Assembly (NCBI GenBank): GCA_964199315.1
Contig: OZ116702.1
Location: 11,656,001 to 11,720,000, forward strand
From: Orbicella franksi
Taxonomy: Eukaryota
Length of the DNA stretch: 64,000 nt
Direction: 5' to 3'
The translations under genes were made by a program, and so were the position numbers. The stretch's first letter is position 1. Each line of letters starts with the position of its first letter. Under the pieces are notes generated by a model, which saw nothing but the letters and a program-made list of their open reading frames with translations, was not told where the DNA came from and did no database searches. Positions 29,184 through 55,651 of the stretch are shown in pieces.

Positions 29184-32116
29184 ATGGAACTGTCACTGAT
29201 TTACCTGCTTCTTACAGTGATCGAGACAACGTGTAACCCTTTCTGTGAAGCAAGCAACTGGCAGAACCCAAAACTTGCAAAGTGGTATCGCCCGTCTGCA
29301 GTCACGGAAGGCTACACCGAGACTGAAGATGGCACTTTATACTTAAACATTGATGAAGATAGTAACACAGTCCGTGATTTAGCCAAAAAAGTCCTTTCTA
29401 TGCTTAATCTTACCGATGACATTTCGGTGCAAGGGATCTCTTTTACTCAAGTGGACTCCAGTCTTGGAAGGTCGCGAAGGGCGCCGGGGATCTTTGGAAA
29501 GGACACCCGGGTAAACATGCGAGCGTCTCTCGAGGCGCAAATGTATCCGTTCTCCACCGCCGTGATGCTTTCTTCCGGTTGCACTGGCACCCTCATAGGA
29601 GCTCAGCACGTGCTGACGGCCGCACATTGCGTGCGCAGTGGAAAAAGACTGTTAAAGAGTGCTAAAAACTTGAAAGTTGGTAAGTATCTGTCTCTAAATA
29701 TGGCGTTTGATAGAGGAATATTTCGTCTTGCTCAGTGTGGCGATGATATCATGCCAATGATATCTCTTTAGTGTTTTGTTCATTTTAATTTACGTTTCGA
29801 GATTATCGGGACGGTGCGTTATGTCACATATTCTGAACTCGAAAAATCCGTGCGTTATCCCTTTTCACATGGTTATGAATTCCTTGGTGATACAATGGCT
29901 ATCGTTTGCAGAGGTTTCCAGACTGAACTCGACATTACGATGTGTCTGCTTCGTCATTTTTATATATCGGTTTGACAACTGACCACACAGTTTGTCAAGT
30001 GCCTAAAAACGAGCAGTGACTAATCGTAATGTAAAAGAAAATATCTCAAACAAAAATGGTCTTCACTTGACGTTTGTTTTGATTTGCCGTTAATAACGCA
30101 GAACTGTAACACCAAAATAATGTAAGATTATTGAAATTACTAGCCCACTAGTGAGAAACCAAGCGTGCCGTAGGGGCGTTAAGCCAGTAGTAATTAGACG
30201 GTAAATGAAATAAACTCCAGGCATTGGGTATCTTTTCTGTGTGCATTCCACGAACAAAATGAAAAGTGCTTCCTTTGTAAACTGTACGCATTTGTGTTCT
30301 TCAGCTGTTTGTTTGTTTTGGTTTCTTTGATCGTGGTCTTTGTTAAGTGTTTCCGTCAGTTATCAGCGCAAACCTCAAAGTTTTCAAGCATTTCAGCAAT
30401 GCAGAATGTTTCGTGACAAGCGATCGTGCGTGAAAAATGGCAGTCTTAATTCGCTTTTAGATCAATTTTGTTAATGCGAAACCTGTCCTATTGCAACGAG
30501 TGTCAAAATATCAACCACTGCTCAGAGAATTATCATTTTTCGGAGTTTACATTTCAAAGGACAATAGCTTTCATGGTTATTTATTAAACTTATTTAAAAT
30601 GATCTCCGATTAACTTCTTTGAGTAGTAATTTGTCTATGGATGAAAAATCGAGGTCTTGCTATGTTATAGAAGAAAACAAATACTTCTTTCTGTTACGAA
30701 AAAGTTGCCAAGTTACAAATACATCTTCACTATTATGCCCCTCTCACAGAAACGCCTCTGAGGGAGGACGCACTTTCGCCGTCAGAACTATTAAAGATTG
30801 GAACAGTTTACCCCGGTCTTTAAAAACAGAGAAGTCCGTTAAATCGTTTAAGGCTAAATTATGTAATACTATTCTTAACTCTCAGAAAACTAATGGAATT
30901 TTTTAACTCTTATTATTCGTAGTATGTTTGAAATTGTAAGTCCAGTTTATTATTTGTAACCATTTTTAATAGTAACTTAATTAAGTATTTTATTGTAAAT
31001 AATATCGTATTTTAGCATTTTATTGTAAATAATATATTTTTAGCATTCTAATTATTTTAAGCTGAGGGCCCCAAGTTTATCAGTAACTTAAGTTACTGTC
31101 ACGGGTCACTCTCATTAAATAAAGTCTTTCACTTCACTTCACTTCACTGATTAATGGCAATGTACATCTTTATTTAATTCACTTTTGCAACACATCATTT
31201 TCGTTGAAATAAATAGGCCTTTTTTTTCCGCGCTTTCCGCTTAAATTCTCACGATCATTTAAAGAAAATGATATCAAATGGATCTGAAGTCTGTTCAGTG
31301 ATGTTCCTTGTTAACTTGGACTAAAACGAAAGCCTTTGAAGATACATCCGATTAATAAAACGGTGTTCAGACCCATTAATCAGACAGCTGCATGCGCCAC
31401 TTAAAACATTATTCTCGCTAGTACGCTTTCTAAAGAACCTTTCATTCTTACAATTGCTTGTATATACACTGGTAAATTAATTCTTGGATATTGTATGATG
31501 TGTACCTGCAAAACAGTTCTAAAGTTGTGCGTCCTTAATTAAATCAGTGAAAGATTTGGTTTGTAAAAACAGAGTAGTTAACAAATTACTACGTCAATTA
31601 CACGTCATAAATTGATTCCGCATTGATTTCTCAGGCTTGCTTCAACGTTCAGGAAAGTTCCACTGGATCCGCGTGCAAAGAACATATGTGCCCAAAGATT
31701 GGAAGACACAGACCCCGCCAAGAGACAGGCTGAGATACGACTTTGCGGTTTTGAAACTCAAGCGTCAGCACAACAGGCAGCACATGTCCGTGCAGACGAG
31801 CAACCTCCTTCCCGGCTCAAAAATTCAGTTTTCTGGCTTCCACGGTGATAAGTGGTACAACTCGTTATGGTACACGTACTGCCGGGTGTACAGAAAATCG
31901 AATGACATGATTCTCAACTTCTGTGATGGTGCTAAAGGCGTCTCCGGATCGGGAGTTTACGTAGATACTCCTAGTGGTGATGAAAACGCCGTCGTTGGAG
32001 TAGTATCGGCAATAGCCCGAGGAAAGGTCAAAGGCAAAGTGTTGGAGTTCAATGTTATAAATTCCCTTACCAGTACCAAGGTGCGACAGATTTCAAAATG
32101 GGTTACCAGACGCTAA
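29184..32116 (+). CDS. PRSS23: Serine protease 23/35-like (PRSS23 family), 325 aa, secreted, intact catalytic triad
   Basis: Exons 29184-29679 and 31635-32116 (GT-AG, phase 1, 978 nt). Signal-like N-terminus, furin-type RSRR site, then IFGKD.R, YPFSTAVMLSSGCTGTL...HVLTAAHC, KFHWIRVQRTYVPKDW, YDFAVLKL, CD..KGVSGSGVYV. These match the PRSS23 family pattern (YPFST.V.LS.GCTGTL, FQWIRVKRTHVPKGW, GASGSGVYV). Confidence 0.93.
30730..31148 (+). mobile_element. 5'-truncated CR1/L2-clade LINE 3' end inside the PRSS23 intron
   Basis: ORF2 C-terminal motif LLCP..RNASEGGRTFAVRTIKDWNSLP...SVKSFKAKL (F.R.I..WN.LP....S...FK..L), then a 3' UTR, AATAAA at 31118-31123 and a (TTCAC)n tail ending at 31148. Confidence 0.8.
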
Positions 32117-35933: not shown

Positions 35934-38685
35934 GTGCCAGATTTCGAAGCGATAATTAACAGATCAAAACACTGGTAACGTTAATTATACCAAGCCGCCG
36001 TCTCCAGGCAGATGGATCGATCAGGCCACAGGAATGCACTAACGTCATGCACTGTAGTTTCTTTCCTCTCCAAATCAAACATTGATCTCCCCTTGCAAAG
36101 ATAGCATTTCGTCTGAACAAGCCTTTGACAGGTACCAGTTGTAAATTTCTAGAGTAGAAGTTTCAGCTTTAGATAGGAAAAAATGGTTTTGCTTGAATGA
36201 GTTGTCAGTTGATGACCGTCATGTGGAAGAATGCATAAGAAATTTCAGTCTTGAAAGTAAAACATATCTGAAGAAGCCGATATGCCGTTTGCAAAATCGT
36301 TTTTCAGTCCACTGAGTCGTGAATGTTCTTTTACACTTAGATCAACTCTTGAGAGCTATTAAATGCAAGGTGAAGACTTGGTGGAGACGCCAACTTGGTT
36401 AGCAATTGTTAAGGTGAACAATGGTAAGTGGCTCTTGACGTTTGTGTTCAATTTGGATTTGTTATTTTCTTTCTACATTTGTCATATATTTCGTTCTGCA
36501 ATTAATTTTGATGAAAATATTCGAAGTAAAGTAACCAACGTATCTATTCTGACAGCTTAAATGTACCTTAATGCTTAATAACTATTGACCTATCATAATA
36601 CGGGAATCACCTTAGTTATTTTATACATAATCTATCCTAAAGTTCTGTTTCAAAGCTAGCCCAATGTCTCCCGGAACAATTAAGGTGCACCAGCAATGCC
36701 CCTAAGCCTGAGAACCAACAGAGGTGGGGTTTCTAAAGAATGAATGAAAAATAGAATTCCTAAATTGACTGAGGTCTACTGCAAACTTAGTGGAATCAGA
36801 AATTCTTGAAGGGTCATTGTAACCACAACCGTTTGCCCACAATTTTGAGTAACATGAGGGTGGGTGACATGAGGATGAGATTACATGATTGTAAAATTAA
36901 TTCAAATTGCCAAGCCTCTGTTCAGTAAGAGATCAAAGATGACTTAAAAATGTGGCCGAGGAAACAAATTAAACAAATCCTGAAATGCTATCACCAATAT
37001 CTGCAATGTGGACCTCCAACATTGGTACAGATTGTCGCGTTTCTCTACATTTCAGCAAAAAAAAACAAAACACCCATTTTAACAAAATAGAGAACGTTGG
37101 AAGAAGACTTTTAAAACTCAGGAAATAACGAGGATTTTCGATTATTTAATAATCTTTAGGGCGAAGACAAATAATCGCAAATATTACATGTTTTGAAAAT
37201 ATTTTAAACAAAGGCCAGATTGTTTCCGGACTGTCAGATTGCTTCCGGATTCCATTTTTCATCACCTGTCTTTTTTATTTGATATATGGTGTCGAAAACC
37301 ACGTCTGGTAATTGACGCTAGGGCGGATTGGGTGTGGTGAGTAAAAATGTTTCTAGTAAATGTGCATTTGCTAAACAGCAACTAGAAATTGAAAGGTAAA
37401 TTCATGCTTTGTGACCATCCAAACCGTGAACGTGATACAGTACAGTTTAAACAAATTACGTGCTTTATTTTTTTTGTTCTTTTCAACTTGCGTGATACTT
37501 CATACTGTTTAGGTCTTATATATACGTTATCTTGCTTACAACCTTTAGGTTGCTATTTAAATCCATTATTCATATTGTGTTTCAGTCATCATAAATTGTG
37601 AATGAACAATTAGTCTTCCGCCTACATTCGGGACTATTTATCAGTTTACAGCGTCATATAAGCCGACTGCCTCTGTACATGAAGAACTGGGATCAGTTCT
37701 ATGGAAAATATTTACACTAGTGTTATGTTTCTTATTACTTAGACTTAATAAGAGAAATTGATTTACAATATTTAGAAGTGTCCAAAGCCGTTTAAATCTA
37801 TGCACAGGTAATCCCTTTTACATATAATCACCTCCCTTTATGCACACAGTTTATACGCCGTTGGTTTCGCTGTTTTATAACCTCTAAGTGACCTAGCGTT
37901 GACCATAGGGTTTGTTATTATGCTTTGCCTTTTTGTTTCAACAAACGACATTTGATGTCTGCGAAAAAGAACAAAATTAACTAAACGTAAATTGCTCATG
38001 GAACCGCAACACGCCGTAGGCAACATCGGTCTAATTCATGTTAATTTTAATTGCCTTTTGCAATGAAAAACATCTCAAGATCAATGCATAGCTCTATAGC
38101 TCGCAAATATTCTTAACGACATCAACCTATTTGATATTAAAAATTGACCGTAACGATTTTTCTTACCATGTTTTCAGTTAATCGTGCTTCCCTGCGAAAC
38201 CGGCTTCCAAGAAGATTGCACGCTGTTGCGCAATAATGAGCTGCTCTTTGCATGATATATAAATTTCAATCATACAACGTTATCTGCCCCTGATAACACG
38301 TTATCATGTACTGTGAAGAAACCCAATGTTACCTGCATGCAGTTGGGTACAAAAGTAAAACCACAAAATTAATAGACGGCCTGGTATATTACAAACCACG
38401 TAACGCAACAATAAACTGTCTTAAGTTAACTTCCACCTTAAGTCTAATTATTGCTCGGCGATATTCACGTCTTTTTCAAGAGCCCTTCGAAACTTTTCCA
38501 AACTCTAAATATATATATATATATTTTTTTTTAACGGCTTCTTCTCTAATCCCACTCCAATATTACTGAGCTAGTACTCGGTTGATGTTTTTAAATCCAC
38601 GCAAGTCGCGACGTCAGCACCATTCTCTTTACAAGACGAAAACTCTTTGCTTCACTTCAAAACTTCGCACGACGGATATATAATG

Positions 38686-39045
38686 TCAGCCGTTTAAACA
38701 CGGTCTGCAGGCGCATTTCTTTGCTTCTGGGTAGCGAATCACTTTTATTACTCCGTGGCAGTTCACTGATTTTTCTTTGATAGTAGCTTCGATGGGTGCA
38801 CAGCACGAGCAACTTGAAGCAAATCCAATTCTATGGCTGAAAGGTTTCGCCGACGACAAGCATTTGCCGCTACAACCAGAAGTTGAAATTTTGAACTTGC
38901 ACCCGTCACTTTGCATCTGGAGGAAGCCTTTTCGCACTTCACAATCTGAAGTTGGTCTTGGCCAATATTGTCTGCTTTTTTGTTTAGCCGTGACAATGAC
39001 GATCAGCAAAATCCCCACCACGACTTTGGAAACGGAAAGCAACAT
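38686..39045 (-). CDS. Secreted cystine-knot hormone-like protein (bursicon/Norrin/glycoprotein-hormone superfamily), 119 aa, 11 Cys
   Basis: ATG at 39045-39043, 20-aa signal peptide (MLLSVSKVVVGILLIVIVTA), Cys at 35,49,58,62,79,81,82,96,111,113,116 forming C-x-G-x-C, S-C-x-C-C and C-x-C-x-x-C. Coding region is uninterrupted; possible 5'UTR acceptors lie just upstream. Confidence 0.92.
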   Translation of the reverse strand: MLLSVSKVVVGILLIVIVTAKQKSRQYWPRPTSDCEVRKGFLQMQSDGCKFKISTSGCSGKCLSSAKPFSHRIGFASSCSCCAPIEATIKEKSVNCHGVIKVIRYPEAKKCACRPCLNG

Positions 39046-42000
39046 TTTTAAAACGCCTGTAGGGATAGAAACAGTTTCGAATTAGCCCTGAAAAGCGGTT
39101 CTTTAGTCTATTATCTATCTAACTGCTCATGGAATTATATGATTGGTATTAAAGACAAAGCGATCCCTCAAGTCCGTGAAAGATCTCATCTAAGACAGCA
39201 GCACAGTGTCTCTAGTGCAACGATGGAGTTTTGATAGTCAATTGAAAGTTGTACAGCACAAAATAACTGGAGTTAAGCTGTGAATTTAAAAATGGATAGG
39301 TTTCTTTAACTGAGAGTAAAAGACCGTATTGACGTCAGACCAGACGCTTAAATTCACAAAACATACAGAAGAAGTGAAATAAATTATTTTTTCTTCTAGT
39401 CTCGCCCGCTCAACTTTCAAAACAATTAACTAGTGTAGGGTGCTAGTTTATTGTAATGAAAGACCTGTTTTGTTTGCAAGTTACATCCTAAAAGCCAAAA
39501 AAGTCCCAATACCCTGCAATATGAGTTTTTTCCTTGTGCAATTTCGATTGTAAACTAGACTGGTTATCTATTTCACCCACCTGGGAGCCCCGTGCCGTGA
39601 AAGCTAGACGTGTATTTGCAGCACTTCAGTCTAAATCCTTTCAAATCGTACTCCTCACTCAAGAGGCGACACGCTTACTACTTCTGCGGCTCGCCAATTG
39701 TTTTCTGATCAGTAATTACCAAAACATAATGAGAACAAAGATTCCCTGTGTACAATGGCCACCGACCCTTCAGTGGATCGAGTTTGACATGTCAACGACA
39801 GTGCTTTACACATCCTCATCTAATCACTCCATTAACGTCAATTGCATTGGTAATAGTTCGACGACGTCAGTTCGACAGCCAAGTTGATTTTATGTGGCAT
39901 ATTTGTCAATGCTTTTCTATGAAAATCATAAACTGTAGGCCACTAAGGTCATGATCTTTATGTTTATATTAGCTCAAAACGGCATTAAATACCTTGCTCC
40001 CGGCACACTTCGGTAATCTGATCGCGTCTGTATCTCAGCGATAGGTTCGACGTCTTCAATAGTCCTTTTCAACGCATGCGTAGGTTTAATTCAGCAATCT
40101 ACAACGAAAATTAACTTTACTTTAGGTTACTACGTACAAACGTTTGACTGAATTAGGCAACGCCAGACTGAGAAAGCAGCGTGCTTCACAAAAACCTGAG
40201 TATGTCGGGAGTTTTAGTCCTCAGACAGTCCAGAAAAATATTTCTGTTTGTTAAAATAACTGAATATTAACCTGCCTTATATTAGAACTAAGTACTTTAT
40301 TTTTTAATTCGAACGGTTAGAAACTATCATCAATTGCGTATCAATTCAATTGCATATCAATAAACTATAATCTGTCATTGTGGTTTATGCTCAATCGACT
40401 TATTAAAACATGATAACTAAGGTTGACTTTCAGAAGTAGGCCAAAAACACAGTCGGGTGCCTATTCGAAGCAATATTTCAGTCTAAAAATTTATTTCAAA
40501 TTAGCCACTCTTCCAAATCAGCGAACACCGTTAAGATTAAAAGCGTTAAGACCTAATAAACTTTCTGTCGCGAAGAAAACATCTCTTATTGTCCGACTTG
40601 AGGAGAAGACATAAGCTCACGGGAGCCAAATGATAATACAATTTAGGATCCAAATTAGTGTCCTGTACAACAATTTTACATGGCTTTTCGTTGACTCTTT
40701 CAGTTGCAGTTGCAGATAAATTTGGAGTGCCTACAGCGTCAAACTCCACAAGATTTCATTGCCTAATTCTTTTAGGGCGAAGGTGGCCAGTTATTGTACC
40801 GAATAACAACACAACGAGAAAATACGGTGACAAGACAAGTAATTGGTGTTAATTCTTCGTGCATCCGTTTCACGAACTAGATAGGACACGAAAAATAATC
40901 AACACTTACGGACGTTTTGAAGTATTTTTGCAGCGTACGTGACCAGAAAACTAAGTATCCTGCGTACTACTATGGGTGTTTTCATGCAATCTGACGAATT
41001 TTCAAGCAAGTGTTTGCTCTCACGGCAGGTGCATCTGTACGTACCTAGATACGATTGAGGAGTGCTGTAACTGGAATCTCCTACACGGGTCTGGAAAGTT
41101 CTTCCTTTAGCGGTAAATCATGTGAGTGGCTTTCAGAACACGAGAGCTAATTAAAGGCTTGACAAAGGTGATTAATTAGGCCTATCATTGCCTGCTGGCT
41201 GGACACACAGAGGAGATCATTAGGTGCATGTGCGGACTGACTAATGAGACCGTTATGCCTTGTCGTTGTGTCACATGTCTATAGCAGGGAGAGTAAATCC
41301 TGTTGCGTCTTAAGCATTTTCAGTGCAAGATTTGATATCTAAATCGTAGTAATTCTAAAAGACGGTGAAATTTTTAACTCCTCACCCAACTTTAAATTGA
41401 TTGGCTACCCTTGATACCACATCATTCTCGCTTACATCGCCTGTGTTAAGTCCGCATTCATCTTGAAGCGGGTTATTCTAAGTTGATTCGATGAATATAT
41501 CAACTTTCACTTCATACACTTCTCTGGTGCAATGTCACGTATGGGAGCTGTTTTGTACAGTTGTACCATTTCTACTTTGTTTAAAATGAATAAATTACCG
41601 ACATAATTTATGCACGGTTAAAAAGTTGTGATGTTGTTTACTCGAACAAGTTTTAAAACGCTTTCCATTTGTCATTTTCAAGAACACATGTACAAGTACG
41701 ATTCAAGAACTAAGGTTTTCATAACGTTTGGCCCAGGATTACTGTTTTTGAGTGGAAGCTTAGTTGTCTTTCAAAGAACCTCAATTACTCTGCGTTTTAT
41801 AACAGAAACTAGCATGCAAAGCCAGATTAAATCATGGAAGTAAGTTATGACCTTAAATCAACTATTATTTCATTATTTGTTAATAGACACAGCACTTTCC
41901 TATCTAACTATTAACTAAACTATTTTGATGACTTTTCTTACTTGGAGGCTTCTTTTCCAAGCTTAAGAGTAAAAGCAGCTTCCATTATCTAATCTGTTCG

Positions 42001-42404
42001 AATTTGTATTTCAACCTTTACTTAGGGGGATATGTGTTTTGTGTTACAATTTGCTTAAAAAAAAACGTGAGAACGTTGAATTGACGCTTTTGCCATCTGT
42101 TAACATTGTTATGCAATTCAAAATGGCGGCTAGATTTCGTCATTTGGCAATCCTCTAGGGACTATATGGCGTGCCAGGTAGAACGAATGTTCTTTTTCAA
42201 CAGAACGCATAGCGTTTCTTTCTGAGTGCATGGTATGACACGTGTTTTGAACAATAATCGATACTGCTATGGAACAGCATTACACGAAGCTGTTTAAGTT
42301 TCATCTGAATGGTCACAAACTAGGCTTCCATTGTAAGGTCACGAACTACAGTTTTGTCGTTTACAGACTTTAAAATCAAAAACGCATTGTACAATACTTA
42401 ACAC

Positions 42405-42633
42405 TATTATAAGGAAGGATGAGCCAAATCCTGGGCTGTTATTGGCTACCGCCCAAGTGGGCAAGATGGGACTATCGTGCCCGCTCGGGATTACCCGCTG
42501 TGTCCCGCAAGAAATTGGTTTTCTTTATGCCACAATCTTTTATTGACCAAGCTTGTTCGATCAAGATGGCTAGATATTGGCCTCGATCAATATCCAGCCA
42601 TCTTGCCCTCGCGCTTTGTCAATAACCCATATG
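42405..42633. mobile_element. Interspersed repeat family B copy (internally deleted)
   Basis: Colinear with 17404-17702 and ends ...GTCAATAACCCATAT. Confidence 0.7.
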
Positions 42634-43158
42634 TACTACACGAAATTACAGCTCAATAGCTTTCATTTGAATGATCAGACACTAGAATCTCGTTTACAAC
42701 GTGTTCTTGAGCTTCTCACTTCTTAATTTGTTTTTTTTAATTCTACCAGGTCTGTTGGCTACCTGCTTATTCCCTTATCAGGCTCGATTTGTCGTTATAA
42801 CTGTTTCTTGAACTTACTGGCTTTTAATAAGTAAATGTAGTCTTTTCAAAATCTGTACCTTTCAGGACCAACGCTACGGACGCCTTAACCGAAAAATCTA
42901 GCCTGCTGTCGGGTTGTTTTTCGTAATTTCTTCCATTCTTCCCCCCACCATGGCCATTGTTGTTCCTCTTTGGTGCGTTTGCACTTTAAAGGTTCTGATT
43001 AAATAATTTTTTCATCGCGAGGCAAGGCAATATATCATTAGAAAAGTTATTTGCACTGAGTGAAGAATCCCAATCACAAACAAGAAAGAAGATTGGTGAT
43101 CTCAAAAACTACTTAGAGCTCAAAACGTCTTTTCCAATTCCAGTACAAACAGCAGCCA

Positions 43159-43309
43159 ACCCCTTCAAGCTTTGCTAACAATGTACAATGCAACCAACTT
43201 CTCTTTCTGCAGTTGTTAAGTTTTTCCCGTACCTACCCCTTCAAGCTTTGCTAACAATGTATAAAGGCAACCAACTTCTCTTTCTGCAGTTGTAAAGTTT
43301 TTCTTGTAC
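43159..43309 (+). repeat. Two-copy tandem duplication, period 76 bp
   Basis: ACCCCTTCAAGCTTTGCTAACAATGTA..GCAACCAACTTCTCTTTCTGCAGTTGT.AAGTTTTTC starts at 43159 and again at 43235. Confidence 0.9.
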
Positions 43310-44802
43310 AAAATTTAAGAAAAAAGCGTAACTTTAATATTGTTGGGTAAATTATCAGCAAAATTACATCTGTGATGGCTCGCAAAAATACCGAGCCTTC
43401 AATATGCTTTCAACGAATTTTCAGTAAATATGAGTTACTATGCTTTCAAGAAATATTAGTAAAAGATAGGCTGCTTACGTTTTGTTGTTCAGTTGAGGGA
43501 TAAATATTCAACAAAAAAAGGGGCAGCGATAAGAAAAACAACCTAACGATGATGCCTGGCTTGACTTGCCAAGTAAGATTACGTCTGAAATCTTTATCCA
43601 AGAAACATTAGTCCTCGAATCTCAAAATCAATTCACTTCAATTCTTCTGGGTTTGAAACACTGTACGTTGAACTAAGAGGCAACGTCTGCTAAACAACGA
43701 TTTCAAAAACGAGGAAAGGAATAACGAACAAAAGTCATCGATAAAAGAATGTTCGTTTACGTATCTTCTATCATAACAACTCGGCAATACTTTATTTTCT
43801 AGGAGAAATATGGGGAAAATTCGGACTGGCATTACACCGGAATCACAATTTAGCAAGTAACTTCACTTTCCCGATCAAGTGGAATCCAAAGATTCCCTTT
43901 ATCTTCACAGGGATAGACAAATATAACGTTTTAGGTTTTTACGTATTGTCAGTTTCCCACGTCTCCGTATAACTCATTTGCTGCTTGTCTGATCAGAACA
44001 ACGAAGCGAACAACTTATTGTCTACATATTCACGTTCGCTATCTACAAATTCAGTTCTGTAGCAATCACAATTATTATACTTTTTTTTCTTTTCTGCTTT
44101 GTATTTAGCACATTTCAATTTGTTATAAGACTTTACAAACAGCAAAACTTTGACGATTCATTATGGAGGAACTTCGACGTAGATGATAACTCCTTTACTT
44201 CCAGACGGTGATTGCCGCAGAGTGTAGGAAAGAATACACAATGAATGTAGAGTCAAATATAAAGAAAGCGTCGATTTCAATAAGGATCTAATAAGAAAGT
44301 GGACCTTGTTTAAAAACTTGAACAACGTAAATTAAACAGTTTTCAAGTTGATGCTGACATTGTCATTGCCATATTGACACTCCCAGTCATGGCAAGAGGT
44401 CTTATCAAATAATAACAAAATAATAAAGTGGAAACATAGAAATTCTTAAAACGTATCAAACCATGGTTTCCAAGCTTTGTACAATTAAAAATCTTATCGG
44501 GAGAGAAATCTATTAAATCCCAATAATGCGAAACTAAAATTTTGTCGAAAATGTATACGACATACAAAAGTGAAACAAATGTCGTTTCCGTTTATGACGA
44601 GCCCTAGCTGTAACAACACAGTGATCAGTCTCTGTTTTTGATAGCTTTCTTCTCATATTTTCAATGGAATGGTGAGATTGAAAAAGTAGCACAATTCAAC
44701 TACAGCTAATTCTCATCCCTTCTGTCAATGATCCTGAAAGCAAGCAGCGTTTGCTAAGTGATATAATCTAATAGCTTTTTGTGTTCGCGACTAAAATAGA
44801 CT

Positions 44803-44849
44803 AAATAATGGGAATAAATAATGGGAATAAATAATGGGAATAAATAATG
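44803..44849 (+). repeat. 13-bp minisatellite (AAATAATGGGAAT) x3.6
   Basis: Read directly from the sequence. Confidence 0.9.
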
Positions 44850-45496
44850 TAACTCCACTCTCACTTAGATTCAATTTAACATGGTATCTTTTTCTCACCT
44901 GGGAAACTTGTCGTTACTCTTCCTAAAGAGAAACGTAAGACGTAGAGAACTATGACGGTTTTTTTTTTCTAAGAGCTGCAACATTTGAAGCGTCAATATC
45001 AGTCGTAGCAAAGACAGCTCGACCAATACTTCGAGATCCCCAAATGCTTTTTTTATGGTGTAAATATGCTTTCAGACAAAGAAATTCGAAAGCATTCTTG
45101 TGAGAAAATTTACAAGATTTACTTTATATATTTTAGCATGAATTGTCAGAGACACAGATACCAAGAGAAGAGAACATGAAATACTCCCATAATCAAGAGG
45201 GTAAAACTGGGTGTGACTTTGCGTGACTGTCGAAAACCTTTCTTCCTTGTAACTTTACTCCAAGAGGAATTTAAACCACATCACAACTCTAAAAAACCGC
45301 TCTTTTAATTGATGTCTTGAGCCCTAAGGTCTTTTATATATCATGCAAATTTCATACCATGTTCCGTGTTGTTCATGCATAAAGTCGGCCCGCTTAGAAG
45401 CAGGCAGTGCAGGCTGAGATTATAAGCTTAATCCAGGCGTACGGCGCTGAATCTCGACAGCCTTCCTCAGTTCAATTTTGTTTGCCCGAAAATTAC

Positions 45497-48400
45497 CTGT
45501 ATTGTACAAATGTATTTACTTCCAGGAAGGCCTTTAGTAGCAACGAGAAAAGCAGTAACGTTGTACACATGTGTTTCGTCCGTCGTTTCGATACCTATAG
45601 CGGCCCTATCTGATGCACTTTATTGCACTACTCATTTCCTTTCGACAGTGCAAAGTTTCTACTCATTTTGAATATGGAGTGATAGTTAAAAGCAATAGCC
45701 GCAATACTGAATAATAGAATAGCATAAAAGATTCACATTTCTTGTATGCCAACCAGGATGGCAATTTTCCATCGACTAAACGATTCCAGTTTTCACTGAC
45801 AAGATCACATTTATCTGACGCTGGTACATGCCACGTCACTTACAAATAACTATCCAGTTGCTGTGATGACTTATGACTTTGTTGTCATGATTTTGTTGTC
45901 AGTTATTGCATTGTTTCCAAATTAAGTTGCTGTACGCTACATAACAGGAATATTTGCTTTCACCCGGAATGTCTTACCTAAGATGTAATGGGAAGACTTC
46001 TTGTGGGTTGAGTTAAAAAATCGAGTATGGGCAGCTGATTTCACAGAACTGAGTTCCAGTTGATGAAGGTTCGTTAGGATTATCTACTTGGATTGTCTTG
46101 CACTACAATGTAGCCCTCGTTCCTGGGGGCGTCATTAAGGTGCTTGTCTTTAAGCCAGATGACAGCAATTAAATGACTTGAGACGCTTTTTCCTTGAGCT
46201 CTAAATAGCTTAAGTGAGATGTCAGACCCATTGAGATTCCAGAATAATCTGAGAAGGAACTGTCTGGTTTCCAAAACGACTGATTTGCATATAAACTTTA
46301 AAATGAATTATAAATAATGACATTAACCAATGTACCTTCCTACGAAGAGAAGAGGTTATGTTGTGATATCAACCAAATAAGTCGTACAGAGTGGGCTCAA
46401 CTGCGGTTGGTGTATATTCCAACGTGAGCAACACTGTCGATGTCAACTGAAGGTGAGCCTCTTCCAGACTTGCTTTCTTGGGGTTTTGTTCAAATAGGAA
46501 CACACATGCACTTAGTCACAAGCCATACCCACAGGTTCATTACTTAATGATTCGTTGTCTTCTGTCTTAGCCGTCCGACTATGCAAATTTTTAACAGTGT
46601 TCTGCTGTTCATACATAAAGCTAGGTCACATGGAACTAAGTGGTGTAGGATTTGGAGTGTTAGCTGAAAAAAACCGCCGGAGCCAAATATCGTAACTGTA
46701 CTGCTCAAATTTAGTAAACCATACATTTTATTTACAGTAAAATTATTGTATCGAGTACGTGTCCTTTGTAAAAGCCTACTGTGGCTGGCATAAAGGCACT
46801 GACCTACTAATTGATTTAGGGACGTTAGAAAATGGGTATCCACTTTGAAGTTACAAAATGGCTTCAACACCTATCAGCAACATCAAGAGAAAACTTCTTA
46901 TTCATTATACGTTTGTTTAACGGGCTAAATTAGACAAAATTTCGGCGCTTTTGCTGGTATTGATAAAAATTAATCCAACCGTAGTAAATCACACAGGAAA
47001 AATAACTTTTTGTGCTCTATTCTTGCGTAGTTAGGTTCAGCTATGCGTACGATACCATGACTAAATACCTTTAAAATATTGCTCCAAACCACCTTACCTA
47101 CGATGTAACTGATGATGAGCTTCTCAGATGGGGGTCGAGTTTAAACTTTGAGTACTGCATACCTATGACGTGCTCTAGTTGACGACATTTTGATTAATTT
47201 CCTTCCTGGTGGCTGATAAATTCAGCTGACAATAATTAAATCCGATTTGACAGACCTTTTCTTAGCTTTGACGCACTTGAATGAGATGTGAGACCCAATG
47301 AAGTCATGATGACAATCCTGAGTAGCTTCGAAAAACAAGTGTTGGAAATCATGTCATGAAAATATCATCAAGAAGATTACCTAGTGTGCTATTTTTGCCT
47401 GGCACGGATCATGTGGCATTTCTACATGCGGATTTTAATGTACATGAGTTCATGTACAAGCTAGAGGATAAATGAAAGCCTGACGGAAGAAGCATGTTCA
47501 GTTACATACAGTAACGATGTTGAATATAATATAATAACGATAAATTAAAGATATGTTGTATTGCTAAACACGTTGTAGTAACAGCTTGTTCATAACTGCT
47601 GTTTTTTCGTCCTCATCAGAGCAACTGTACAGCAACTGGAAACAGCTCACGCATGGGCACTTATGTGCGACGTTATGATCAAAACAAGTCTATCTAAACT
47701 GCCATGCATTTTTCGAAAGCTGTTTCCAGTTTTGAACATTCACATAAAGAGAGAGACAGTGGTCTTGAACTTTGTACATGTACATATAATATATTAAGCA
47801 CTACAACGTATTTTGCATTCAAGCATACGGAACCAGAAACTGATTTACCTCAAGAAATTAAAGATATGCTCTTTTGCTAGACACATCGTAATAACAGCGG
47901 GTTCATCACCGATTTTGTTTTCGTCCTCATCAGAGCAACTGTACAACAACTGAAAACAGCCCACGCATGGGCAACTATGTGCGACGTAATGATCAAAACA
48001 AGTCCATCTAAACTAACATATTTCGAAAGCTGTTTCCAGTCTTGAACATTCACATGAAGAGAGAGACAGTGGTCTTGAACTTTGTACATATAATGTATGA
48101 AGCACTACAACATATTCTGCATTCAAGTATACGGAACCAGAAACTGATTTACCTCCATACACGAAACTTGTTAGAGTTTCTTGCCATGTGATCTTAAACA
48201 GCATCTGGCGTCATAATTAACTTTTCTGAGAATTACAACATTGCTTGCAAACATTCCCGCTACTTGTACTTATATTTTCTTTGTAACAGTCCAAATGGTA
48301 CGTTCTCAAATGACTGCAACTTGTAACTTGTAAACACTTAAAAAGCGATATGGCAAAGTAGGAGGTGGAACTTACACTTGATGTTCACACAGGCAACATT

Positions 48401-49330
48401 GCCAGTATATCTCGCCTCTTCATCGTAACCTAACTAGTACACGACATCAAAGATACGCGTTCCTTCAGCTTGTAGTTCTTTTTAACACGGTGAAAACCTG
48501 AGGTTTTCTAAACTAGCTTATATTTGGCAAATACGCAAAACCGATATGGACTAGAAGGAGAAGAGGACTTGATGTGCATACAAAAAAATACAAGAAACGT
48601 TTGCCGGTACTTCTTGCCTCTTCGTGTTAAAAACGGCTGTATCATGCATCCTAATTAGCACACACAAGAAAATATCACTGAGTAAATTCTCCTACCCAGT
48701 TTCTTCGCGTGACCTAGAATGAATGGTACCTTGTGGAGTCACCGCAATTGTAAACACTTCACATCAATTTGGTACTAAGGTGCAAGAGAGGACCATCCCC
48801 TACGAACTGCCGCCATATTCTGACAAGATGTTTTACTGCACCATTATCAGAACGTGTAATGCCGCATGTGTCATAAAACGACCCAAAGCCTATATGAAAT
48901 ACTTTTGTCGGTCACTTCAGAAATAGAACCTTTAAGGGGTAATCTACTGATATAGCTTTTCTTAATGCTATTTTGCGTGCATTGATGTTTACACTAATGA
49001 CGCACTTGACGAAATGACTGCTGTTCTGCCCTACGACGAGGGCTTCAGGCACTCACAACAACTTGATGACACGTGATTTCATCTCAGTTCGAGTGGTTTC
49101 GATGGTCGTAATTCTCAGCATTGGTATATCACTATATTGCACTTTAGGTTTTTTACATGAGAGTTGAGCCAAGAAGAGATGCACGAAAGGGTGCCCAGTT
49201 AGTTCGTTCATATTTAAGTACAAAACTCTGTTGGTTTCTTTCGGAAAATCATCCCCTTTAATTGCCATGGTCATGCATTGTCTGACATTGTAAGGGGCTT
49301 GAAGACGACGACCACCGCAAGGAAACATCT
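45497..49330 (-). pseudogene. Decayed multi-exon gene for a cell-surface protein with FN3-like repeats (possible sushi-like exons upstream and a TM-like segment downstream)
   Basis: Series of AG/GT-bounded minus-strand segments: starting 49330, 48889-48730, 48497-48376, 47317-47098, 46663-46336, 46248-45978, plus a donor at 45497. Segments 47317-47098 and 46248-45978 are paralogous (GSHISFK..K.RSVKSDLIIVS* versus GSDISLK..QGKSVSSHLIAVIW; both end TTACATC.TAG|GTAAG). Multiple in-frame stops and frameshifts. Confidence 0.5.
47604..48155 (+). repeat. ~245-bp imperfect direct duplication (47604-47851 and 47918-48155)
   Basis: Colinear copies from TTTTCGTCCTCATCAGAGCAACTGTAC to GGAACCAGAAACTGATTTACCTC. 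Confidence 0.9.
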
Positions 49331-49429
49331 CTAATCAAAAAAATTAAAGACAGGAGCAACGGCCCTTCACGTGAGGTATACATGCATCATTGTGCATTGC
49401 TTTCCTGTGCTGTCTGCACGCGACCAACG

Positions 49430-49709
49430 TGAAGTAATCACATTCTTGGCTTTTTAGAATGTACCAAGCGTAGCCGTGAGTCTTCTATGCTTCTAAACGG
49501 GGAGTCATCACATTCTTGGCTTTTTGGAAAGCACCAATCGTAACAGTTATTTTTCTAGGCTTCTAAACGTGAAGTCATCACATCCTTGGCTTTTTAGAAA
49601 GCAGCAACCGTAACAGTTAGTTTTCTAGGCTTCTAAACGTGTAGTCATCACATTCTTGGACTTTTAGAAACCACAAACCGTGACAAAACGTTTTCTATGT
49701 TTCTAACTG
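49430..49709 (+). repeat. 70-bp tandem repeat x4 (diverged)
   Basis: Units start at 49430, 49500, 49570 and 49640: TGAAGTCATCACATTCTTGGCTTTTTAGAAA...TTTTCTAGGCTTCTAAACG, with no unique spacers. Confidence 0.9.
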
Positions 49710-50531
49710 AATGTAGAAAAATTCTTGCACATTCAGAAATAAATGTGAAAAAATTATATAAATTTAACGTAAAGGTTAAAAAAAAAATAGATAATGGAAA
49801 ACGTTTCACGATTATAATGAAGACAGTACAGATTCGCAAGATGGCAACGTAAACTTGGTTAAGCATTTTTGAAAGACCACACTTTCATTTCAACTTAATT
49901 TTCGGTAGCGTCTGACGGAAACAGGGATAAAACCTCTTCCATGACATATTTCCTAGAAATTTCAATCAATAAACGTAGCGTGCCAGAGGCTCACACGTGC
50001 ACAAGTATGCGCAAAATCTACGTCGTCCATATTGATCATATCTGCGTGTTGAAATTGCTAAGTTAAACTTAAGTGATAATTTCTTGGTTGTTTCTAAGCA
50101 TATAATATTTAGCAAAAGTCCCTTTTGTAACGTCAATGTCAGACAGATTTCCAGTCCGCAGATACAGGCAAATGGATACATAGCCAGTAGTGTCGTTCAA
50201 GTCCTTTAGAAATCTTTAGAAGTTCTTTTTCGTACCAAAAAAAAACCCTTCCGGAATTCGGTTCATGACGATGTCAGTCGTTCGAGGTTGATCGTAAGGA
50301 TATCACTGAGTGTTTTGATGAAGCTAGTTTGGAAGGGTTTTGTTGACACTGAGGCATCATGAGAAAATGCTGAGATAGATAGCAGTTATATGAGCACATT
50401 TGGATAAAGAGCCAGATTAGTAGGCTGGTTGTGGCCAGTGACCGTTCATTGTTAAAGGGAATCTTGGATGAAAAGTAGTTGAAGTTCAAAGTATACCTAA
50501 TGGTTCTCTTTAACTGATCCTGGGCCTTTAA

Positions 50532-53500
50532 GAGTGCCTGCCCGTAAAAATCAGACAAATTCTTAATTTCGCGGCAAGGGTCGAAAATTCGATTTCGCTC
50601 ATATTCTTATGGTAGATAGGCTAGGGCATGACAAAAAACTACTGGATAGTTTTTTTGGCAAAATATCCTTTTATTTCAAAGAAATATGCAAATTACCAAA
50701 TACCGTTAAAATCGTCATTTGACGCACCATTTTATTAAACAAGTTTGAGAGCCTCGCATGCAAAACCACATCATTCTTCCGTCTTTAAAACACTCAAATA
50801 TTTTTGTGCAATGTTTAAATGTGTACTGGGTTGATTTTAGGGAATGTTACGTTGTCTTTTTGGGTGCACAATAATTAAATTTCGAAGACATGTATTTCAT
50901 TCACTTAAAAGTACTTCGTGAATATAATTAATTTTCACCATGTGCGAAACTTTCAAATGGACCAAGCTTCTGGTGGTTGAATTGCAGAAGGATGGTCTAC
51001 AGATTCCTGTAAATATTTCTTTGGGCAAATGATTGTGAGCAACGCGAGAGCTTTTCAAAGTACGTCAAAAATGCAAATATTTGACCATCCGTCGTCAAAT
51101 TTCAATTTACGAGTTAGACGTATATTTTAGCATGCGCCACATGACTTGACCTATGTTAAGTTGAAATAGACACAGAGCTGATAATTTCGAAATGTTCTAA
51201 CCTCATTTGCTGTAAAAGGCAGGTCCAAAGCCGATTTGACGTGTTTCTATCACCATTCTTCGCACATAAAGCAGAAGTTTGGTTTTGTTTACATAACGTC
51301 CGATGTACATCGCCAACTGTCAACTTATTTAACGGTCGAATACCGTGAATCTGTGACCCTCGTTCGACACATATGATCACCACTGCATCTAAGTCAAAAA
51401 CGGCTAAGTCATTTGTGGATAGTTGCTTGCTTTGCACTACACCAAAATATTACGTTTGATCATCACGGTTTGATGGCTTGAATCCTTGCTTGCAGCGGTT
51501 CCTTGTTCGTCACGCAATTCTGTCATCCCATTTTAGGGGGTAGGGGTGGAACAATTTCTATCCTGATACGTAAGGTTCCGTAAGGCTTGCAATCACTGGG
51601 AGCACGTAATCGTGTTGAGTAGGAAGAGATTAAATTAAGAAATGAAAAGAATGAATAATTTACCATTGCCTCTGTTGTTATCTTTTACTCGACCACCGCT
51701 ACCTACATGCCCCTGCGTAATACTGTAACGCTAAACTCATACCTAGGTCTTTTCGCGCTATGCAATTATTTTTGGTTTATATGTAATACAGTGGGCTATC
51801 CCCGGGGAAATGGGTGGCGACCGCTTAATGGGGCTAGCCGCTTAAATAGAGGTTGGTGTACCTTGAATATTTAATTTTTCACTATCGGGCTATAAATTTC
51901 TTGGTGAACATGGAGTCAATTCAATACAATCATGATAGACGTGTGTTTGAATTATCACTCGTCATGCACCTTCAATTTCAGACTCTTCTCTGCCATCGCC
52001 CTTTCCAAAACAAAGTTCTTAAATTTTGGGTGGCCGCTTAATAGGGGTAAAGACAATAATGAAACCCTTATCGGAATGACCAAATGATGGCCGCGGAGGT
52101 AACCAGTCAATAGGTGTTTTATTTACAATATTTTACTGACGATAATTTTGGACTGTACTGACAACAGTCCTCTATTTTCTGTTACATACCAATGCCTCGC
52201 CACTAAGCAAACAACTGATACGCCAAACAAAATGGCATGGCCAGGGCTATTTACTCACGTAATTACTAATTAAATTTAGTCCGTTTTTCTCACGAATTAG
52301 ACACGTTGTGATTTCCTATTTTTATTTCAGCTAGTTCTTGCTTCATTAATCTATAACTTTTTTATGACGATTCTCTTAAAATTCTAGTGAGTACAGGTAC
52401 TAGCTTTATCAGCTGTTGTCTGAAACATCAGAACGTACAACAAACGTGATATGGACCGAGGCCACGTACACTATAGAATATGATTATATAAATATACACA
52501 TGTTATTATATATATGAAAAAACAGAAGAACAATGATTAAATTGTTTCACTTATGCTGAGAGTACTCTACAAAATAGATCAAAATGTGCAGCATATGCCG
52601 TGACAGCACTGCGTGACGAACAACAACGGCTGTAAGATTGTGCTGCGCCGACACGCTTATCAGCAATGGTCAGCAATCAATCAAACGCAATATTTTGGCG
52701 CAGCGCAAAGCGAGCAACTATCTTCAAATGTCTCAGCCGTTTTAGACTTTGATGCAGTGATGTTCATATGCGCAGAAAGATGGTCACAGATTCATAGTAT
52801 TCGACCAATAATAGGTTGACAGTAGGCGATGTACATCGGATGTTAACCTTGTGTAAACAAAAGCGAACATATGCTTTATTTGCGACGAATGGTGAGAGAT
52901 CGACTAGAAACACGTCAAATCGGCTTTGGACCTGCCTTTTACAGCAAATAAGGTAAGAACATTTCGAAATTATCAGCTCTGTGTCTATTTCAGCTTAACA
53001 TAGGTCAAGTCATGTGGCGCATGCTAAAATATACGTCTAACCCGTAAATTGAAATTTGACGACGGATGGTCAAATATTTGCATTTTTGACGTACTTTGAA
53101 AAGCTCTCGCGTTGCTCACAATCATTTGCCCAAAGAAATATTTACAGGAATCTGTAGACCATCCTTCTGCAATTCAACCACCAGAAGCTTGGTCCATTTG
53201 AAAGTTTCGCACATGGTGAAAATTAATTATATTCACGAAGTACTTTTAAGTGAATGAAATACATGTCTTCGAAATTTAATTATTGTGCACCCAAAAAGAC
53301 AACGCAACATTCCCTAAAATCAACCCAGTACACATTTAAACATTGCACAAAAATATTTGAGTGTTTTAAAGACGGAAGAATGATGTGGTTTTGCATGCGA
53401 GGCTCTCAAACTTGTTTAATAAAATGGTGCGTCAAATGACGATTTTAACGGTATTTGGTAATTTGCATATTTCTTTGAAATAAAAGGATATTTTGCCAAA

Positions 53501-53612
53501 AAAACTATCCAGTAGTTTTTGTCATGCCCTAGCCTATCTACCATAAAAATATGAGCGAAATCGAATTTTCGATCCTTGCCGAGTTATTTTCCATTTTTAT
53601 GGACAGAGACTC
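50532..53612. mobile_element. 3.1-kb foldback-type non-autonomous element with ~930-bp inverted arms, TTAA-flanked
   Basis: Arms ~50532-51460 and ~52678-53612 are reverse complements; TTAA at 50528-50531 and 53613-53616, both ends starting GAGT. No transposase ORF in the ~1.2-kb spacer. Confidence 0.9.
51789..52155. mobile_element. Probable Tc1/mariner-type MITE remnant (TA|CAGT..ACTG|TA) in the foldback spacer
   Basis: TA-CAGTGG at 51787 and GGACTG-TA ending 52157, with repeated internal GGCCGCTTAAT/CCGCTTAA motifs. Confidence 0.45.
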
Positions 53613-54271
53613 TTAAGTTGATATCTCTGTTCTTAGTTCAAATAAGAAGTGTTTAGTTTTCAGTTTAAATCACCTGGGCGCCGCCATGTTTACTTTATGG
53701 TAATTTATGATGTCATTGCGTGGTCAGAGATCTCGAAATGGAGTTTACAAAAGAGGATGGACCATGTTCAGCTGGAATGTGAATTATAAACAATTAGAAG
53801 CACTTTTATATCTCTAGATTCACGCAATGCTGTATTTTAAAAGTATCCAACTGCGTATTGACAACAAAATGTCCCATCAAACTTTGCAAAAATAAACATG
53901 GGGGCCCGCGGGAAACTTGGACTCCTAAAATAGCTGAAAAGAAACATCCAGCATTCAAAACAGGCAAAAAATTATCGACTTCAAATCACTGAAACAATTT
54001 AACACAAACACCAGCTTGGGATTTAAAACAAAACTGTTTTTTAGCCAAGATTCCCTTTAAAGACTGCCGTGTCCTTCAACAGAATCTTTTGATAAATAGA
54101 AGACATGTACCTTGTGTGCTGTGCTGTGTGCTGTACTGTGTTTCCACAGCTCTTTCGATTAGAAAATACCGCGAAGAAAAAGAAGAAAACAACTTGTTTA
54201 CTCTGATCATCAAAACGTAAATTCTCTTTGCTCGTGACATTATTACGTCAACAGCTCGTTCTGTGTTTCTA

Positions 54272-54569
54272 CTACTAGCGTTCTATCAGGAATTCCGTTC
54301 TCTGATTGGCTACGCTACTCACTATCTATTCTGTGATAGATAGTGAGTAGCCTAGCAGTGTGCCCTTGTTAACAAAATGACGGCCGCTTCTTGGCGTTTT
54401 CGAAGTGTCTGTGATGAGGATTTAGATAAAGTTTTGAACGACTTGCAGATTTATACTAAAACAATTAGATTATTCGCTCTCGATTTCTATGCGTGATGGT
54501 TGACTTAGGCTGCGCCCTCGTCAACTATCGCGCAATGGAAATCTCGACCTCATAATCTAATTGTTTAAT
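54272..54569. mobile_element. Interspersed repeat family C copy
   Basis: Colinear match to 18150-18447, same orientation. Confidence 0.8.
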
Positions 54570-55442
54570 AGTAAGACGATTTTAAACCAATCAGCGCGCG
54601 TGTTTTCTTTGGGCTATTCTCACTGCATAATTAATTAGCTCATTGCAAAAGATGCTATTATTTCCGTGTTATTCCCGTTATCGCCCGTGCTGGTAGCGTC
54701 GGTAATGCTTTGAGCCATTTGGAGTTTAAATTTGGTCGTTTCGCTTGAACCGTGGTCTTTTCGTCCTGTGCTCCACAAAGACAGTCATCTTTTGCTATCC
54801 ACCCACCTCCCCTGGTGGCCGTTGCATGCCTACTTCCTCGTCAGTCGCTGCCTCTTCCCATATGCGAAGAGGTAATGAGTATGCAGTGAGGATATGGTTC
54901 TATTTTCTGAACACATATGCTGTATGCAGCTTGCCTCGTAATTCCAGATGTGGAAAGCGATCCAAACATTTCTATAGCATAGCCAGATAAATTGCGCAAT
55001 CTAAATCAGTAAAGCGAGAACGATCAACCATGACTCAAGGGCGCACGTCCATGTTCCTAAAAATGACATGTGCAAATCGCCGCACTAACCAAAATTTGAT
55101 TTCGGTCGCTCTAAGCAAAAATAACAAATTGTTATGAACTTGGAACGCTAAGAATGAACCAGTTCTTAAATCAACGAGGAAAGCGACCTCTAAAATAAGG
55201 ATCTTGTTAGGTTCTCTCTGATATAACTTGGCAACAATTTTTTTTCGGACGTTTAAAGGCTATTTTCCTGAGATTCGGATTAGAAACTCTTTCGTCAACA
55301 GTTGTCATCAACTTCCACCAGAGGTTCCGACGTTATTTTTCTCCTTGTCTGTCCCGCTATGCGACATTTTTTATCATTGAGACAAACTTAAGATGTTTTA
55401 GAAAATGCATGTACTTTTTAAAATGGACCTCTTTTTCCTTAA

Positions 55443-55651
55443 GCCCTGGTCAAACGACGCATGATAGTTGAGGATAGTTGTAGCACGTACTTCCGTTTAA
55501 CCAACTACCATGCACTGTCATCGACTATCGTAAACCATCTTTGAGCTTGATCAAATTCTTCATGATAGTCGATGGTAACGTTTCCCGTTTGACCACGCGT
55601 ATGATAGTGTATGATTATCATGGGCTATCATGCACCGCGTGTAACCACGGC
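55443..55651. mobile_element. Degenerate Harbinger-like MITE
   Basis: TAA|GCCCTGGTCAAACG ... CGTGTAACCACGGC (11/14 TIR match), with internal repeated GATAGT/ACTATC motifs. Confidence 0.45.

Follow-up and report, generated by a model that had tools for sequence, protein, structure and literature searches.

Small secreted cystine-knot hormones (CKHs) related to bursicon (Burs) and the glycoprotein hormones (GPHs) are an established cnidarian class. Burs/GPH-like peptides have been described in sea anemone, coral, and Hydra, and they share a pattern, as follows: 11 cysteines, a short N-terminus, typically no N-glycosylation sequon, and no cysteine after the last knot cysteine (PMC4079206). Cubozoans have four bursicon-like GPH subunits, Tcy-GPH-1 to -4 of Tripedalia (PMC6402141), and NvCKH1/2 are described in PMC9910494. 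The present analysis concerns a candidate member of this class in the coral Orbicella franksi. The gene lies on the minus strand at positions 38686–39045 of a 64,000-nucleotide stretch, here called the window (NCBI GenBank assembly GCA_964199315.1, contig OZ116702.1, positions 11,656,001 to 11,720,000 of the forward strand).

The 11-cysteine CKHs of non-bilaterians have been argued to be covalent dimers (PMC9910494). Models of bursicon and ctenophore CKHs have three interchain bonds, formed by the two outer cysteines of a CxCC motif and the last cysteine, and an "alpha-ancestral" homodimer has been proposed as the ancestor of all ligands of G protein-coupled receptors with leucine-rich repeats (LGRs) (PMC9910494). 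Type A and B LGRs are reported in cnidarians (PMC4079206, PMC9545775). The literature examined contains no report of the biochemical characterization of a non-bilaterian CKH ligand.

On balance, we think it somewhat probable that the O. franksi gene encodes a small, secreted, non-glycosylated protein of the cnidarian bursicon/GPH-like CKH class, acting as an extracellular ligand in the form of a covalent dimer, most likely a homodimer. An initial annotation of the window, made from the letters of the DNA, had stated that hormone-like genes of this kind occur in cnidarians. They do, and the class is already described (PMC4079206, PMC6402141, PMC9910494), so that the novelty is less than the annotation implied. 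What is new is the gene model, an orthogroup distinct from the published coral genes, and a coral repertoire that comprises at least eight such genes and whose layout in the genome is defined.

The Encoded Protein

The protein-coding features are the following, in window coordinates.

38686–39045, minus strand: complete coding sequence (CDS), 119 codons plus a TGA stop in one exon; from the list of open reading frames (ORFs), Pfam, orthologs, and the ratio of nonsynonymous to synonymous substitution (dN/dS)
38983–39045, minus strand: presumed signal peptide, residues 1–21, with cleavage inferred after VTA; from a hydrophobic stretch read in the sequence
38698–38943, minus strand: cystine-knot domain, Cys35–Cys116, with all 11 cysteines; from alignments A1 and A2, the AlphaFold2 (AF2) model, and fold matches

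The cysteines are residues 35, 49, 58, 62, 79, 81, 82, 96, 111, 113, and 116, all in the mature part of the protein, downstream of the hydrophobic N-terminal leader. The initial annotation had reported 11 cysteines together with the motifs SCSCC, CACRPC, and CSGKCLSSAKP; all are read in the 119-residue ORF at exactly 38686–39045, and the cysteine positions, including CxCC, bear out the bursicon/Norrin/CTCK-type framework that it proposed. Cleavage at the inferred site would leave a mature protein of ~98 residues, with ~13 residues between that site and Cys35. At the other end, the protein terminates three residues past Cys116, and no cysteine lies beyond the last conserved one. No N-x-S/T sequon is present in the protein; its two asparagines stand in the contexts N-C-H and N-G-stop. 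The further description of the product as a stand-alone, secreted-type cystine-knot protein lacking a sequon also holds, given the leader, the separate ORF, and an in-frame stop upstream of the ATG. The features in common with the cnidarian Burs/GPH pattern are a secreted protein of ~100 residues, 11 cysteines including CxCC, a short N-terminus, no sequon, and no cysteine past the last of the knot.

In the Pfam search, the protein matched Cys_knot (PF00007) with 27.5 bits against a cut-off of 24 (E 4e-6), and neither DAN nor Hormone_6 gave a match. The AF2 model has a mean predicted local distance difference test score (pLDDT) of 85, with values of 87–97 in the knot domain. The leader is modeled as a helix at residues 5–19, with low pLDDT and outside the knot domain.

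Nearest Characterized Families

The best solved match throughout, that is, by sequence, by profiles A1 and A2, and by fold, is chain A of entry 8enb. The title of the entry names the C. elegans alpha2/beta5 LGR ligand, and the deposit labels chain A "Bursicon"; we take chain A to be the alpha2 chain. A single-sequence phmmer search gave an E-value of 0.0013 for 8enb chain A and a nonsignificant 0.4 for Norrin. With profile A1, the E-values were 1.1e-14 for alpha2, 1.5e-14 for NBL1, 2e-14 for gremlin-1, 8e-12 for the von Willebrand factor (vWF) CTCK domain, 6e-11 for Norrin, and 1e-5 for GPH beta. The orthogroup-only profile A2 placed alpha2 first (8.8e-10), ahead of NBL1 (9e-8), gremlin (3e-6), vWF (9e-6), Norrin (2e-4), and FSH beta (0.04). 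The A2 alignment to alpha2 covers ~87 residues with a single one-residue gap. C. elegans beta5 gave no match to the A2 profile at E-values up to 1.

The fold searches agree in outline. Foldseek, run with the AF2 model against the PDB, placed 8enb chain A first and Norrin chains at ranks 2–4, and also returned gremlin-1, FSH beta, NBL1, and the vWF CTCK domain. Among Swiss-Prot models, the fold matches (E ~1e-5 to 1e-4) were GPH beta chains, insect bursicon, Conus thyrostimulin alpha2, mucin CTCK domains, and gremlin. The ESM Atlas feature search listed GPA2 clusters first (0.93–0.95), followed by partner of bursicon (0.91). These fold searches fix the superfamily and not the family, the E-values lying within one to two orders of magnitude of each other. 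To summarize, the GPA2-like resemblance noted at the outset is real in the sense that alpha2 is nearest in sequence, profile, and fold searches, by modest margins.

GPA2, represented by C. elegans alpha2, shares with the coral protein the CxGxC-S motif and the C-terminal CxCxxC. The two differ in that alpha2 reads K-C-C, without the first cysteine of CxCC, where the coral protein has C-S-C-C. Moreover, alpha2 is reported as a heterodimer with beta5, its C-terminal cysteine being reported as intrachain (PMC9910494), whereas neither the window nor a genome-wide profile search contains a beta5-like partner gene linked to the coral gene. Membership in GPA2 fails on the cysteine pattern and the missing linked beta5-type partner. 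A bursicon/Norrin cysteine framework carried on a GPA2-like chain is nevertheless a fair picture of the protein.

Insect bursicon resembles the coral protein in having 11 cysteines and three presumed interchain disulfides, with a structure-based identity of 23–26% and a fold E-value of ~2e-5. The motifs SCMCC and CMCRPC of Drosophila bursicon are like SCSCC and CACRPC. Bursicon, however, is an alpha/beta heterodimer with genes that are often linked, and it activates a type B LGR (rickets/LGR2), whereas the coral gene is lone and its product models as a homodimer. Norrin and the vWF and mucin CTCK domains have the 11-cysteine pattern as well, and their fold matches have template modeling (TM) scores, normalized to the hit, of 0.63–0.75. 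Crystal structures of Norrin and of the vWF CTCK domain are antiparallel homodimers, with disulfides from CxC to CxC′ and from C-terminal cysteine to C-terminal cysteine′. The differences are that CTCK domains end very large proteins, whereas the coral protein is the product of a stand-alone gene, and that Norrin has weak sequence similarity to it, ranking behind alpha2, NBL1, gremlin, and vWF with profile A2. The published coral "NDP" is another locus, described below (L031).

The DAN family (NBL1, gremlin, SOSD) has the same superfamily fold, and its profile E-values are within 100-fold of the best. DAN proteins lack the CxCC cysteines, and the four members from the O. franksi genome that were placed in a tree cluster apart from the coral protein. 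On the CxCC pattern, the Pfam result, and the tree, DAN membership was rejected.

Conservation and Orthogroup

A word-indexed search found 18 relatives, including proteins of 117–157 residues with 56–91% identity; the orthologs as a whole are stand-alone proteins of 117–160 residues. Two relatives are named and come from Desmophyllum pertusum and Pocillopora damicornis, both of them stony corals. An exhaustive search of representative proteins gave 36 at E ≤ 1e-3. Other named relatives are the "glycoprotein hormone alpha-2-like" and "bursicon-like" proteins of Sycon and a "glycoprotein hormone-like secreted protein" of Tripedalia, the last a direct match at E 1.9e-9 and 39% identity. A search of a 5.8-billion-protein set with profile A1 returned the same cnidarian matches only, with no named bilaterian sequences, and an exact look-up of the protein in public assemblies recorded nothing. 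All 11 cysteines are invariant or near-invariant across 47 relatives.

The ORF is a genuine gene, well beyond a chance reading frame, and it is under purifying selection. Relative to a related-coral contig with an ortholog of 90% identity, the CDS has 93% nucleotide identity and the whole 2.2 kb has 79%; dN/dS against this ortholog is 0.35, and residues 73–119 are unchanged. This Logan contig is colinear genomic sequence, not cDNA, and carries no splice evidence. In two orthologs, P0001 and P0004 (91% and 71% identity), the frame runs past ...CLNG with W and an unconserved tail of 27–38 residues. The TGA stop of O. franksi at the point where these two continue could be a TGA/TGG difference or a gene-model artifact.

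Two trees were built, one of full-length sequences and one of the knot domain only, from an alignment of only 90 columns, with long branches and bootstrap values that had yet to stabilize. The protein falls inside an orthogroup (98/97) that comprises 24 database sequences, 18 of which make up its core (97/93). This orthogroup stands apart from every other paralog of the same genome, including the seven other 11-cysteine genes, and the orthogroup is found in stony corals and some more distant relatives. More broadly, the protein groups with cnidarian and sponge CKH-like proteins. The CTCK exons of the O. franksi genome form a separate clade, and its DAN paralogs split off at 97/86. Clustering with DAN-family antagonists had been raised as a possible outcome in the initial annotation; the protein is separate from the DAN paralogs at that node.

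Cystine-Knot Paralogs in the Genome

The genome was searched with the protein, PF00007, and profile A1, followed by ORF extraction. It holds eight genes of the 11-cysteine CKH type, each with a CDS of one uninterrupted ORF. Two are lone and six are in two clusters. The gene studied here is lone on C5 at 11.69 Mb; the nearest cystine-knot matches there belong to a CTCK exon (6.36 Mb) and an SOSD-like exon (17.44 Mb). Within the window (C5:11.656–11.720 Mb), the genome-wide profile search has this gene as its single hit, that is, no second cystine-knot gene is found there. The earlier remark that no second subunit gene is nearby therefore stands for the 64-kb window and does not extend to the genome as a whole, where seven more 11-cysteine paralogs are located elsewhere.

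Comparison by eye with the supplementary alignment of PMC4079206 connects several paralogs with published coral genes. On C15, the gene at 5.362 Mb (plus strand; L021) is the ortholog of coral B/GPH1. Beside it are three tandem, near-identical 118-residue copies at 5.365–5.374 Mb on the minus strand (L004/L020, L003/L018, and L006/L019). This four-gene cluster (C15:5,362,445–5,373,540) could be a linked set of alpha/beta-like type that has undergone a recent triplication. The ortholog of B/GPH2, L030, is at C15:14.514 Mb (plus strand), and 11 kb from it, at 14.503 Mb on the minus strand, is L031, the ortholog of the published coral "NDP". Situated head to head on opposite strands, L031 and L030 (C15:14,502,830–14,514,623) resemble a further linked pair, whose products are candidates for a heterodimer. 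The further lone gene, L027, is at C2:18,071,001–18,071,381 and encodes 126 residues; it scores higher with Pfam DAN (32 bits) than with Cys_knot (18 bits), and in the tree it is with the C15 tandem copies (98/80). In addition to the 11-cysteine genes, the genome holds genes resembling NBL1 and SOSD, three that resemble gremlin, and CTCK exons that are parts of larger genes. The NBL1 and gremlin paralogs have CxxC instead of CxCC.

None of the six coral sequences printed in the supplement of PMC4079206 matches the protein studied here. By the same comparison, its identity with the published coral B/GPH1, B/GPH2, NDP, NBL1, GREM, or SOSD was ruled out, the counterparts being at other loci. Thus, in contrast to B/GPH1, B/GPH2, and "NDP", which are L021, L030, and L031 and are situated in linked pairs or clusters, the present gene is lone and falls in a separate orthogroup (98/97).

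Predicted Dimerization

A homodimer of residues 31–119 was modeled in three runs, along with three controls. The model score was 0.51 in the three runs, and the best of the three controls scored 0.02. In calibration, 21 of 30 solved homodimers and none of 23 monomers came up to this mark; among animal proteins, 7 of 16 did. At least 92% of contacts recur across the runs, and the partner pLDDT is at least 83. The modeled interface includes residues 55–70, 79–84, 111, 113, and 116–117, that is, the CxCC motif and the last cysteine; the disulfides themselves are not resolved by the model. A dimer had been predicted from the odd number of cysteines, and the homodimer model, which passes its controls, speaks for that prediction.

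By analogy with Norrin, the vWF CTCK domain, and the published bursicon and ctenophore CKH models, bonding would be arranged as follows. The knot would be formed by bonds 35–82, 58–111, and 62–113, with a loop-to-loop bond 49–96. Interchain bonds 79–81′, 81–79′, and 116–116′ would tie together two chains in antiparallel orientation, and the resulting covalent dimer would act as an extracellular ligand, most probably of an LGR of type A or B. A homodimer is favored because the gene is a lone one, in contrast to six of its seven paralogs, which are in linked pairs or clusters.

Transcript Structure and Expression

Evidence for splicing and expression comes from the raw reads of one polyA RNA-seq run (X24); contig X13 also covers parts of the transcript. 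The transcript features, which include 5′ and 3′ untranslated regions (UTRs), are as follows.

37635–39056, minus strand: last exon, with 11 nt of 5′ UTR, the CDS, and ~1.05 kb of 3′ UTR, the 3′ end being approximate; from X24 depth and the X13 contig
39057–39992, minus strand: intron 2, 936 nt, GT..AG, inside the 5′ UTR; from spliced reads, with splice sites checked
39993–40098, minus strand: 5′-UTR exon 2, 106 nt; depth ~30 in X24
40099–59414, minus strand: intron 1, ~19.3 kb, inside the 5′ UTR; from reads crossing it and the donor site
59415–59446, minus strand: 3′ end of the main first 5′-UTR exon; from a unique match of the loose-end consensus
45978–46010, minus strand: 3′ end of a minor alternative 5′-UTR exon; from loose ends in 4 X24 reads and one X13 contig

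The gene is transcribed and spliced to polyA mRNA. X24 depth is ~100 from ~37.6 kb to 39056 and below 5 on either side, and the X13 contig spans 37635–39058. The intron at 39057–39992 is crossed by 67 X24 reads (35 + 32) with 52 start positions. Another 57 reads lead from 40100 into letters that are unique in the window at 59417–59446, and the donor GTGCGT, directly after 59415 on the minus strand, marks the ~19.3-kb intron. The alternative exon (unique match at 45981–46010) is spliced either to exon 2 or straight to the last exon. The gene had been called intronless. That is incorrect: RNA-seq reveals two introns in the 5′ UTR (936 nt and ~19.3 kb), and only the CDS is uninterrupted.

Exon 2 contains an in-frame TGA 90 nt 5′ of the ATG in the spliced mRNA, with no ATG between them, and a second in-frame TGA is read in the alternative 5′-UTR exon. 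Given the stop 90 nt before the ATG, the CDS exon does not form the end of a larger, mucin-like protein. The initial annotation had asked whether transcripts would reveal such a gene; what the spliced mRNA contains is a stop in frame upstream of the ATG. For the observed transcripts, the splice structure and in-frame stops rule out a mucin/CTCK terminal exon.

The 5′ UTR has two upstream ORFs. One, in exon 2, has two codons (ATG-CGT-TGA) and ends at the same in-frame stop that precedes the main ATG; a second one has 14 codons and bridges the junction of exons 1 and 2 (39993–40098 and 59415–59446, minus strand). In the 3′ UTR, a (TA)n and T-run microsatellite at 38497–38537 was skipped as a repeat in read mapping. 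No canonical AATAAA could be identified close to the transcript's 3′ end. At position 39016, every X24 read and the X13 contig have T for C, a synonymous change of codon 10 from GTG to GTA. This is the only difference from X24 and X13 within the CDS; several fixed differences are found in the 3′ UTR.

Runs X22 and X23, from another sample, gave 0 and 4 reads, which is a weak test of expression. Expression appears to be sample-restricted, fitting a stage- or cell-type-specific signal. Fourteen further runs labeled as RNA or metatranscriptomic contained ~86–92% of the sampled words across the whole of 37700–40200. Since this coverage takes in the intron and the flank, these libraries seem to carry genomic DNA or unspliced RNA. 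The expression evidence was accordingly restricted to the raw-read polyA run, with the 14 genomic-looking runs left out.

Alternative Interpretations

Several points weigh against the reading of the protein as a bursicon/GPH-like ligand that forms a covalent homodimer. The margins between GPA2, NBL1, gremlin, the vWF CTCK domain, and Norrin are small, both with profile A1 and with Foldseek, and 35 of the 47 family members also match Pfam DAN. Deep nodes among the CKH groups are not settled in either tree. Moreover, bilaterian references for bursicon, GPA2, GPB5, and Norrin are absent from the trees, and the position beside bursicon/GPH is argued from ranks in the profile and fold searches and from published work. 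The pass of the homodimer model may stem from solved dimers of Norrin, vWF, or GPH that the modeling network had learned. The signal peptide, including its cleavage site, is deduced from a hydrophobic stretch, and the role of the protein as a receptor ligand is argued only by family analogy.

The choice of partner is also disputed in the literature. For cnidarian CKHs, which occur as dissimilar pairs, heterodimers are favored and judged likely (PMC9910494), and cnidarian subunits may form hetero- or homodimers (PMC6402141). The coral protein could then be one subunit of a covalent heterodimer with another 11-cysteine CKH paralog, either the lone C2 gene or a C15 cluster member, as in bursicon alpha/beta or GPA2/GPB5. 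The seven further single-coding-exon paralogs would supply candidates. We consider such a heterodimer rather unlikely: no partner is linked, the nearest CKH paralogs being on other chromosomes while the other CKHs are mostly paired or clustered, and the homodimer model passes its controls. A homodimer might, on the other hand, act as Norrin does, through Frizzled/LRP5/6 (or an LGR4-type receptor) into Wnt/β-catenin signaling and not through LGRs coupled to cyclic AMP. The 11-cysteine framework, with CxCC and the C-terminal cysteine, the lone gene, and the predicted homodimer all fit Norrin, as do the Foldseek ranks of its chains and the A1 value of 6e-11. Nevertheless, a Norrin-like mode of action seems improbable in view of the phmmer E-value of 0.4, the A2 value of 2e-4 against 9e-10 for alpha2, and the different locus of the coral "NDP" of Roch and Sherwood (L031, C15:14.50 Mb).

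A different function, that of a DAN-like secreted antagonist that binds BMP ligands rather than activating a receptor, is similarly doubtful. NBL1 and gremlin-1 are almost equal to alpha2 with profile A1, and the frequency of Pfam DAN matches among the relatives is in keeping with it. The protein itself, however, matches Cys_knot only and keeps the CxCC that is absent from the NBL1 and gremlin of its own genome (CxxC), and the DAN paralogs separate from it in the tree. Finally, the CDS could be the exon for a C-terminal CTCK domain in a larger gene of mucin or vWF type. In its cysteine pattern and fold the protein is equal to a CTCK domain, and the transcript does have upstream exons. These exons are non-coding for the CDS frame, with in-frame TGAs in exon 2 and in the alternative exon; the protein has its own hydrophobic leader and stand-alone orthologs, and true CTCK exons of the genome are in their own clade. 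We therefore give this explanation hardly any credence.

The preferred reading, a CKH-class ligand that is most likely a homodimer, invites an evolutionary extension. The orthogroup might be an unlisted cnidarian CKH lineage that keeps the proposed state of the LGR-ligand ancestor, namely a lone gene, an alpha2-like chain, the full 11-cysteine framework, and a covalent homodimer. This proposal is tentative and, in our estimation, on the unlikely side. If true, it would give direct access to the pairing between an ancestral-type ligand and the coral type A or B LGRs.

For a conserved and expressed coral ligand candidate, a gene model with CDS, UTR exons, and introns is now at hand. The eight 11-cysteine genes of the coral exceed the published set of B/GPH1, B/GPH2, and "NDP". 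The protein is a likely homodimer and resembles GPA2 most strongly, which makes it a reasonable first candidate for receptor de-orphanization; it is an incremental addition to a known class.

Other Features of the Window

Two long ORFs on the plus strand, at 29184–29771 and 31637–32116, resemble exons of a gene for a trypsin-like serine protease. No Pfam match was obtained for the second, which reads GVSGSG where GDSGGP would be expected. The first matches Pfam Trypsin with 32.5 bits around a TAAHC motif.

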